Positions 3,491 to 63,040 of a stretch of DNA of 64,000 bases are shown piece by piece. Position numbers and translations under genes: made by a program. The stretch comes from Macrostomum lignano (lineage: Eukaryota), in assembly GCA_002269645.1 (NCBI GenBank), contig NIVC01001230.1:125539-189538 (forward strand), written 5' to 3'. A model generated the notes under the pieces. The model did not search any database. It saw only the letters and a program-made list of their open reading frames with translations, and was not told the DNA's origin. The first letter of the stretch is position 1. Each line of letters starts with the position of its first letter.

Positions 3491-6400
3491 CCGCCCGCCC
3501 TGTCTAGCGAGCACTCCGTGCCACCGGGCTCGTCTGGCGCCAGTGGCGCCGGCAGTGGCCGCGTGACCGGCCGCTCCCACGGCGGCGGCGGCGGCGGCGG
3601 GCGGGGGCGGTGAGGAGCCGCACATCGGCAAGTACCGCCTGCTCAAGACCATCGGCAAGGGCAACTTTGCCAAAGTGAAGCTGGCCAAGCACGTCATCAC
3701 TGGAGAGGAGGTGGCAATTAAAATTATCGACAAGACTCAGCTGAATCCTTCAAGTCTGCAGAAGGCAAGTCTTTGTAGCTAGCTTTGGTTTTGTCTCTCC
3801 TGTCTGTCTGCTACTTTCTGTTACCTCTGCTACCCTTTTCTACCCTCTGCTAACTTCTGCTACCCTCTGCTACCCTCTGCTGCCCTTTTCTACCCTCTGC
3901 TACCCTCTGCTACCCTCTGCTACCTTCTGCTACCTTCTGCTACCCTTTTCTACCCTCTGCTGCCCTCTGCTACCCTATTCTGCCCTTTTCTACCCTCTGC
4001 TACCCTCTGCTGCCCTTTTCTACCCTCTGCTACCCTTTTCTACCCTCTGCTGCCCTCTGCTACCCTATTCTGCCCTTTTCTACCCTCTGCTACCCTCTGC
4101 TGCCCTTTTCTACCCTCTGCTACCCTCTGCTACCCTCTGCTGCCCTTTTCTACCCTCTGCTACCCTCTGCTGCCCTTTTCTACCCTCTGCTACCCTCTGC
4201 TACCCTTTTCTACCCTCTGCTACCCTCTGCTGCCCTTTTCTACCCTCTGCTACCCTCTGCTACCCTCTGCTACCCTCTGCTGCTCTTTTCTACCCTCTGC
4301 TACCCTCTGCTACCCTCTGCTACCCTCTGCTGCTCTTTTCTACCCTCTGCTACCCTCTGCTACCCTCTGCTACCCTTTTCTACCCTCTGCTACCCTCTGC
4401 TACCCTCTGCTGCCCTTTTCTACCCTCTGCTACCCTATTCTGCCCTTTTCTACCCTCTGCTACCCTCTGCTGCCCTTTTCTACCCTCTGCTACCCTCTGC
4501 TGCCCTTTTCTACCCTCTGCTACCCTCTGCTGCCCTTTTCTACCCTCTGCTACCCTCTGCTACCCTATGCTGCCCTTTTCTACCCTCTGCTACCCTCTGC
4601 TACCCTCTGCTACCCTCTGCTGCCCTTTTCTACCCTCTGCTACCCTCTGCTACCCTCTGCTACCCTCTGCTACCCTTTTCTACCCTCTGCTACCCTCTGC
4701 TACCCTCTGCTACCCTCTGCTGCTCTTTTCTACCCTCTGCTACCCTCTGCTGCCCTTTTCTACCCTCTGCTACCCTCTGCTACCCTCTGCTACCCTCTGC
4801 TACCCTCTGCTACCCTTTTCTACCCTCTGCTACCCTCTGCTACCCTCTGCTACCTTCTGCTACCTTCTGCTACCCTTTTCTACCCTCTGCTACCCTCTGC
4901 TACCCTATTCTGCCCTTTTCTACCCTCTGCTACCCTCTGCTGCCCTTTTCTACCCTCTGCTACCCTTTTCTACCCTCTGCTGCCCTCTGCTACCCTATTC
5001 TGCCCTTTTCTACCCTCTGCTACCCTCTGCTACCCTCTGCTACCCTCTGCTACCCTCTGCTACCTTCTGCTACCTTCTGCTACCCTTTTCTACCCTCTGC
5101 TACCCTCTGCTACCTTCTGCTACCTTCTGCTACCCTTTTCTACCCTCTGCTACCCTCTGCTACCCTATGCTGCCCTTTTCTACCCTCTGCTACCCTCTGC
5201 TGCCCTTTTCTACCCTCTGCTACCCTCTGCTACCCTATGCTGCCCTTTTCTACCCTCTGCTACCCTCTCTGGTACCCTCTAATCTACTCTTTCTGTCTTT
5301 CGGTGACCCGGCTGCTGCCCCAAGCCATTTGTTGCAGTTCATGTGAGCCTCTACGGTACGTGAATTATTGCGCATTTAATGTTGAGCTTAATTATTATCT
5401 CAGGCCACACAATTCCCTTCTCAGCCTGTACCTGTCTGTCCGTCTCCAAGATATGGAAATATGTAGATAAAGCAGCTAGGAGTCTACCTGCCAGTTCCTG
5501 ACCTCTGAGCACTGTTTTACTAGCTAGTTCCTTATCAGTGAGTATTGTTGAGCCTGTCAGCCTCCTGTCCTAATACTTCTCTTTATCCTAAGGAGAACAA
5601 TGTCTGTCATTATTGCACTGAGGTTTCCTGTCTGCTTTCCGCAAGTCCAGTAAATATAGTAAGCGAATTAATTCTGTTGAAAATTCTTATTTTGGCAATT
5701 TCGGAAAGTTCAGCGCCAAGTTTATTGTAGCCTGAAGCTTCGGCTGTTCATTCCGGTGTGCACTGTGGCATTCGCTATCTCGCTGTGCTCTTCAACCCTC
5801 CTCTCCTTCGGCTGTGTGCACGCAGGCCTCAGGTTGCCAGTTCACCTTAGACTGCACCTTGGCCTGCCTAATAGTGCCTCTCTTCCCTCCTTCCTCTTCT
5901 TCTTCTGTATTGCTGCTTTTCGGCTTCAACTGAGTCACCCGGCGCGGCTCCAGATCGCGGGAAAGTGGGCAGACAGTGGGACGGAGTTGCGTAGGGGGGG
6001 GGGTTAGTTAGACTGCGCGCAGAATTGAGTCAGCTTTTTACCTACCTGTGCAGTGGCCTGGGTGTTAGTTATTACATGCATTTTTAATTTACTCACTTTG
6101 TATTCTGCATGTATATGTATGTGACTACGACTTTATATTGAATAGATTATATTCTTGTCTACAATGTCCGGCCTTTTTTCTGTTTGCTTTCATTGCAGTT
6201 GTATCGCGAGGTTCGGATCATGAAAATGCTGGATCACCCTAATATCGGTAAATGCGAGCTGCTTTTGCCTGTGGGAAAAGTTAGGGTCGGGCGACTTCCG
6301 GGTGTGATGAAATCTAACGGCTGTGAATGCTGGGGTGATGAATTTTATGGGTGTGGATATCTCGGCGTGGTGAATGGCAGGTGGTGAATGTCAGGTTGTG

Positions 6401-62624: not shown

Positions 62625-63040
62625 AGTGTTGAAACAGTAGTGTTACAGGGTGCTGACAGTAATATTACAGGGTGCTGACACAGTTGTGTTACAGGGTGCT
62701 GACACAGTAGTGTTACAGGGTGCTGACACAGTAGTGTTACAGGGTGCTGACACAGTAGTGTTACAGGGTGCTGATACAGTAGTGTTACAGGGTGCTGACA
62801 CAGTAGTGTTACAGGGTGCTGACACAGTAGTGTTACAGGGTGCTGACACAGTAGTGTTACAGGGTGCTGACACAGTAGTGTTACAGGGCGCTGACACAGT
62901 AGTGTTACAGGGCGCTGACACAGTAGTGTTACAGGGTGCTGACACGGTAGTATTGCAGGGCGCTGACACAGTAGTGTTACAGGGTGCTGATACAGTAATA
63001 TTACAGGTGCTGACGCAGTAGTGTTACAGGGTGCTGACAC
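62625..63040. repeat. 24-bp minisatellite (GACACAGTAGTGTTACAGGGTGCT)n in cadherin intron 4
   Basis: About 17 units read directly. Confidence 0.95.

Follow-up and report, generated by a model that had tools for sequence, protein, structure and literature searches.

The window analyzed here, the last 64 kb of contig NIVC01001230.1 of Macrostomum lignano (GCA_002269645.1, assembly Mlig_3_7; contig positions 125539–189538), is rich in minisatellite arrays, and several of their otherwise unlike repeat units share one short word, CTGACA (TGTCAG on the opposite strand). Tandem Repeats Finder (TRF) delineates about 25 well-developed arrays with periods of 10–40 nt, with a combined length of 20.2 kb (32% of the window). 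In the M. lignano assembly as a whole, tandem repeats account for 13.1% (PMC5730564, Supplementary Table 4) and long terminal repeat (LTR) retrotransposons for 20.7% (PMC5730564). The genes in the window are compact and their exons GC-rich; the arrays are mostly intronic or intergenic, and most start either 0–70 nt past a GTRAG donor or just after a stop codon. The contig ends at window position 64000 (record position 189538), where the assembly probably breaks within an array-rich region. The genes and the retrotransposon are the following:

7282–7353, 7437–7973 and ~8343–9047, plus strand: exons of a MARK/Par-1 kinase gene, with a KA1 exon at 11017–11607 and the stop codon at 11608–11610
From 16136, plus strand: NHL-repeat gene, with a 5.6-kb array of 20-mers within an intron
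25858–30190: Ty3/gypsy element
~32.2–33.1 kb, minus strand: Fcf1 gene
Between 51.6 and 62.6 kb, plus strand: exons of a large cadherin gene

The MARK exon set is 91% identical to the M. lignano protein record P0051, whose locus consists of the window itself and the 3.8 kb upstream of it. The Fcf1 domain (~32414–32430, minus strand) and two cadherin open reading frames (ORFs; 59412–59586, plus strand) continue in other, overlapping frames; these changes are frameshifts, resulting from assembly indels or pseudogenes. Homologue searches with the cadherin and with the gypsy pol returned no M. lignano proteins among the matches.

The arrays that carry the motif or part of it, and one microsatellite, are listed below. 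Arrays are labeled by their start (6368, 15049, 16575, 31284, 52913, 62603, 11622, 57518 and 48370), and their edges shift slightly with the alignment, array 62603 for example ending at 63046 or 63052.

6319–7228, motif on minus strand: 15-mer array 6368, plus-strand unit TGGTGAATGTCAGGC, in intron 1 of the plus-strand MARK/Par-1 gene
15049–15613, motif on minus strand: 22-mer array 15049, plus-strand unit TGCTTGGGTGTCAGATGCGAGA, intergenic or with host unknown
16568–22193, motif on minus strand: 20-mer array 16575, plus-strand unit TGTCAGTTTCCTCAGAATGA, in an intron of the plus-strand NHL-repeat gene
31281–31483, plus strand: 25-mer array 31284, 8 copies of TGACACAGAATCTGCCAAATCTAAC, downstream of the minus-strand Fcf1 gene
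52860–53207, plus strand: 20-mer array 52913, unit CTGACACCTCGATCAATGAT, ~20 nt past the GTGAGA donor at a cadherin exon end
62603–63052, plus strand: 24-mer array 62603, unit TGCTGACACAGTAGTGTTACAGGG, starting 11 nt past the GTGAGG donor of a cadherin exon
11622–13352, plus strand: 22-mer array 11622, unit ACACTGACTACAGACCAACAAC, starting 12 nt past the MARK stop codon
57518–58378, motif on minus strand: 17-mer array 57518, plus-strand unit TCAGTGTGGGATTCGAG, in a cadherin intron
48370–50727, plus strand: 40-mer array 48370, 59 copies, with TGACAA and hence only the 5-mer core TGACA
46896–47211, plus strand: (ACAG)76 microsatellite, beginning directly after CTGAC

The hexamer is close to universal in some arrays and patchy in others. 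On the minus strand, the units of arrays 6368 and 16575 read CTGACAT and those of 15049 read CTGACAC, with exact TGTCAG copies numbering 41 in ~57 units of 6368, 275 in the 281 units of 16575 and 26 in the 26 units of 15049. CTGACA is found in 12 of 15 units of 52913 and 15 of 18 units of 62603, and CTGACAC in four of the eight copies of 31284. The 11622 unit has the 5-mer CTGAC only, and array 57518, added here to those noted initially, is a weak member in which minus-strand CTGAC is retained in only 50–65% of the units. Unit consensus sequences and exact copy counts confirmed all eight placements of the motif or its 5-mers within units made in the initial annotation of this DNA.

Several further features touch these arrays. 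Each unit of 16575 reads TTTCCTCAG on the sense strand, which closely resembles a 3′ splice site or an acceptor for trans-splicing, and every 40-mer of array 48370 contains the perfect 10-bp palindrome GGGAATTCCC, which is κB-like and includes an EcoRI site. The start of the (ACAG)76 microsatellite, CTGACACAGA, is the same 10-mer that occurs in the 31284 unit; the microsatellite lies outside the set used for the edge test described below. A solitary inverted pair, CTGACAGTCACTGTCAG, places the motif on both strands at 57005–57021 within a cadherin exon.

Among 23 distinct units, the consensus contains CTGACA/TGTCAG in six, CTGAC in eight and TGACA in seven; CTGAC is the most widely shared 5-mer (8 units) and CTGACAC the most widely shared 7-mer (4 units). 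As the test statistic we used the largest number of units sharing any canonical hexamer, observed as 6 of 23, with P values corrected for all hexamers of this one window. Shuffling within each unit yielded P = 0.0008 and 0.0015, and pseudo-units cut from the non-array DNA of the window yielded P = 0.005. Markov models of order 1 and order 2 gave P = 0.007 and 0.0105, respectively; these two nulls are conservative, because they were trained on the units themselves, and an order-3 model soaks up the motif signal, as expected. Collapsing the two clear families of related units left P ≤ 0.003. In non-array DNA, the frequency of CTGACA is ordinary (19 occurrences against 21 expected, rank 953 of 2080). 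Considering this ordinary background together with the excess under the nulls, the enrichment of the hexamer is real within the window, and the recurrence first claimed by eye stands above chance, with hexamer-corrected P values of 0.001–0.01 across four null models.

The sequence following the hexamer differs between arrays and unique DNA. All six units have a pyrimidine (C or T) as the next base, as against 3–4 of the 17–18 solitary sites in unique DNA, most of which read CTGACAG or CTGACAA. The pyrimidine in the units is partly attributable to their being poor in G, and the depletion of CTGACAY in unique DNA is not significant relative to local context.

Pairwise comparison of the six hexamer-bearing units showed likeness only in words around the core, in line with their earlier description as otherwise unrelated. 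Across all units, two families can be recognized. One comprises 564 and 34510, which have CAAGCATC in common with 15049; the other comprises 25517/30191, 31284, 31701 and 61613, all with AGAATCTRCCAA, and here 31284 is a motif-bearing variant whose relatives lack the motif. Outside the families, words of at least 9 nt are shared by five pairs of units where 0.67 would be expected; the motif is part of three of these words: ATCTGACACC (15049 and 52913), CACACTGACT (11622 and 57518) and CTGACACAG (31284 and 62603). Beyond these three words the similarity breaks off sharply, and shared words lacking the motif show no excess among non-family units. The flanks of the arrays have nothing in common, as judged by an array-masked self-comparison of the window and by aligning seven of the 5′ flanks.

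Where the motif stands with respect to the array boundary was evaluated on eight arrays. On the strand of the motif, the 5′ edge of the array lies 0–3 nt before CTGAC in 6 of the 8 (P = 0.001; P = 0.005 after scanning thresholds and allowing both edges), and the 3′ edge shows no such preference in the same eight arrays. Read on the motif strand, array 15049 starts exactly at the C of CTGACA, 16575 starts 1 nt ahead of the motif, and in 62603 the motif begins 2 nt inside the array; the first unit of 52913 is degenerate and begins with CTGAC. Among 16 oriented 5-mers present in at least five arrays, only CTGAC and its overlapping neighbors show the edge pattern. The pattern hints at the site where arrays start, but we rate it as suggestive only, because the count depends on alignment scoring. 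The (ACAG)76 microsatellite fits the pattern in starting directly after CTGAC. A 23-mer array in the DNA upstream of the window (L001), whose TRF edge falls at TGTCAG, seemed to offer another case and was dropped when local alignment placed the edge 24 nt further out. The units are also asymmetric in composition: on one strand, C outnumbers G in all 23 (173 C and 74 G overall), and runs of at least three C occur in 12. CTGAC lies on the C-rich strand in 6 of 8 arrays, with one array neutral in C/G and one carrying the motif on the opposite strand.

What the window displays, then, is an excess of one word, a pyrimidine fixed behind it, a position near one array edge, and no other likeness among units or flanks. 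These observations hint at a sequence-dependent way of making arrays, but do not prove it. Our preferred reading, advanced tentatively, is that a genuine short core, reading CTGAC-A-Y on the C-rich strand, acts at the DNA level as a duplication-prone site where arrays start and which each unit inherits. Such a site would tend to be nicked or to stall replication, upon which the adjacent 15–25 nt could be duplicated, e.g. when a displaced flap is ligated back or a 3′ end slips. The start of the array would thereby be placed at the CTGACAY site, each new unit would bring the site again, and such arrays could go on growing because every new unit carries CTGACAY. The nick or stall at CTGACAY, and the factor that causes it, are what we infer. 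The full proposition, in which CTGACAY acts in cis as a site of fragility or nicking, the 15–25 nt next to it duplicate, the arrays propagate themselves and minisatellite birth is sequence-specific, is possible, though we regard it as doubtful. In themselves the arrays are unexceptional minisatellites of introns and intergenic DNA that evolve in place; one of them was later split by the insertion of the gypsy element.

A number of results weigh against such a duplication-prone core. The 17–18 solitary CTGACA sites have no array at all. In the DNA available for comparison outside the window, the 3.8 kb directly upstream on the same contig (L001, of which positions 3782–22831 are 100% identical to window positions 1–19050), the 23-mer array lacks the motif and a degenerate 30-mer has CTGACA in one of three copies. 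The number of arrays with the motif at the edge was 6, 5, 4, 4 and 2 of 8 across five alignment scorings. Inside arrays the motif is barely better kept than the rest of the unit (conservation of 0.94–1.00 vs 0.91–0.96), and in array 57518 it is the worst-kept part. Array flanks are not enriched in the motif, nor are small, low-score or young TRF arrays, although the latter test has low power; arrays with the motif are not significantly larger in size or copy number than other arrays, and no polarity of unit decay was found along arrays. All of the evidence comes from 6–8 arrays in 64 kb, and each test was picked after looking. Moreover, we know of no nickase or stall factor with specificity for CTGACAY. 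The initial annotation had proposed that a sequence-specific factor seeds or stabilizes arrays through the motif. The idea has partial support: the motif tends to one array edge, which a seeding role would predict, and this tendency weakens with other alignment scoring. Special conservation of the motif, its enrichment in array flanks and a greater size of the arrays that carry it are not supported.

The same material can be read as coincidence, with the arrays independent of each other and the shared hexamer being the best of many patterns that could be picked across many windows. The motif was indeed chosen after looking, the P values of 0.001–0.01 are corrected only for hexamers within this window, and one of the six arrays, 31284, is weak, having the hexamer in half of its copies and belonging to a family otherwise without CTGACA. 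The fragility of the edge effect under other scorings points the same way, as does the lack of support for the motif from flanks, small arrays, conservation and array size. Conversely, several partly separate features agree with each other: words of 5, 6 and 7 nt are all in excess, a pyrimidine follows CTGACA in six units out of six, three pairs of units have sharp 9–10-nt matches centered on the core, and the edge position is specific to CTGAC among 16 recurrent 5-mers. Chance is a serious rival account of the shared word, only a little less likely than the preferred reading.

The matches between pairs of units could also reflect relatedness over short patches, the core having passed from array to array through non-allelic conversion or template switching, or being the last remnant of an ancestral unit; the six arrays would then not have arisen independently, and no special site would be involved. 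Families of units do exist and have spread locally, as seen for the AGAATCTRCCAA family and for CAAGCATC in 564, 34510 and 15049, and the motif-bearing units form pairs with identical words of 9–10 nt. Against this, similarity does not fade but stops abruptly beyond the shared word, 31–46 kb separate the arrays of a pair, which belong to different genes and are mixed in orientation, and a position of the motif at the array edge is not predicted. The cadherin gene is informative in this respect, as the exons beside three of the arrays are old internal repeats with only 27–35% amino-acid identity and not recent duplicates. This identity also rules out recent paralogy of the three cadherin-intron arrays. 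Overall, copying or common descent of short patches is a serious rival too, though an unlikely source of the core.

The location of most arrays in introns, 0–70 nt past a GTRAG donor, raises the question of whether the signal acts in RNA, with CTGAC resembling a branch point (yUnAy), GTCAG resembling an acceptor, and the units being amplified intron ends. Two units are compatible with this: on the sense strand, CTGAC precedes TTACAG|G by 15 nt in the 62603 unit, and the 16575 unit has the acceptor-like TTTCCTCAG. However, the arrays with a known host gene are split evenly, three reading CTGAC and three GTCAG on the sense strand, and this mixed orientation relative to the host genes argues that the effect is not at the RNA level. 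In the sense cases the motif is at the donor-side edge rather than the acceptor side, and the three readable MARK introns have branch candidates of the TCAAC or CTCAT type, not CTGAC. A splicing origin is therefore very unlikely.

The least credible explanation is the one suggested at the outset, in which the arrays are seeded or stabilized by a TALE homeodomain protein (Meis/Prep/TGIF) bound to TGACA. This core does occur in 7 of 23 units, and a bound protein could in principle stall replication forks, but the full hexamer TGACAG/CTGTCA is present in 0 of 23 unit consensus sequences: in the six units with CTGACA the base after TGACA is a pyrimidine (C or T), and in the 48370 unit it is A. TGACAG is the commonest extension in unique DNA (9 of 18 sites), where it has no link to arrays, and the conserved extension lies 5′ (CTGAC) and not 3′.

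A common origin from mobile elements was considered separately. The gypsy element has LTRs of 180 bp at 25858–26037 and 30004–30190 that are 96% identical, and its gag-PR, RT and RNaseH-IN regions are encoded by three ORFs that follow one another in different frames with partial overlap. It is bounded by a 5-bp target-site duplication, ACCAT, and sits inside a 20-mer array (25483–30860); this array is older than the element, because the element lies within it, and its two halves now hold ~17 and ~33.5 units. LTR-borne arrays can be ruled out, since the 180-bp LTRs contain no array and the element interrupts an array that was already there. The absence of common flanking sequence argues against a shared transposon, and the array edges show no target-site duplications; on these two grounds a common transposon source of the arrays was likewise rejected.

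Other repeats were noted in and next to the window. Within 9439–9716, the 31-mer array is flanked by two 38-bp copies that are 95% identical (9439–9476 and 9679–9716), which implies that a larger unit of ~240 bp has begun repeating. A 1.9-kb repeat with 97% identity, at 54050–55971 and 36497–38421, corresponds exactly to one intronless ORF of 642 aa on the minus strand. The product, Ser- and Cys-rich, has no Pfam match, and the intact protein is absent from the gene-position index; the second copy of the repeat is interrupted. In the upstream DNA, degenerate ~30-bp repeats occupy L001 positions 2600–3700 (~0.1–1.2 kb upstream of the window) and have the form GCTGA[C/G]ATGTCAAGGCTTACGGGGG, with the palindrome TGACATGTCA in some copies; within them lies a telomere-like interstitial run, (TTAGGG)15, at L001 3425–3517.

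The proposed duplication-prone core can be compared with several known systems. Human hypervariable minisatellites share the Jeffreys core (GGGCAGGAXG), which was later linked to PRDM9-type hotspot motifs. The PRDM9 background is covered in PMC6116924. As in the human case, the M. lignano arrays lie at unrelated loci and have units that differ apart from a short common core, with a strong asymmetry between a G-rich and a C-rich strand (C exceeds G in 23 of 23 units here), and in both cases the core is proposed to mark a start site of DNA processing. The organism is different, the M. lignano word is another one, AT-balanced and of 5–7 nt instead of 10–15 nt, and recombination hotspots and hypervariability are not in evidence in M. 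lignano, where the case rests on one 64-kb window. To our knowledge, no edge preference like the possible one seen here has been reported for the human core.

TALE sites, which read TGACAG for MEIS/PREP and CTGTCA for TGIF, have the 5-nt core TGACA in common with the array units, but the units never have G at the sixth base and their conserved extension is on the other side, a C before TGACA. Tandem repeats can also be carried or seeded by transposons, as in miniature inverted-repeat transposable elements with internal tandem repeats, Helitrons and the Drosophila ‘mini-me’ microsatellite elements, where tens of flanking bases are shared. Here, too, one genome contains many arrays with a short common sequence beside or inside them; unlike those repeats, however, the M. 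lignano arrays have no common flanks, and the only adjoining transposon, gypsy, inserted into a pre-existing array. In yeast deficient in FEN1/rad27, flap-mediated duplications and minisatellite instability arise by duplication of a few to ~100 nt from a strand end, irrespective of sequence. The 15–27-nt units of the present arrays would fit displaced flaps of this kind, and the difference lies in the site-specific nick that we propose at CTGACAY.

We found no description of a Macrostomum minisatellite core, or of a sequence logic of its tandem repeats, in the searchable literature. If it is true that one word marks the starts of arrays, their birth would be site-dependent and not a matter of purely random slippage. 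Working transgenesis is established in M. lignano, so that a site-specific event is directly testable, and if the excess of the word fails genome-wide, it is a local coincidence and can be dropped. Tandem repeats are a main reason why the M. lignano genome is hard to assemble, and sequence-specific birth of arrays, if true, would help to explain how they come to make up 13% of it.

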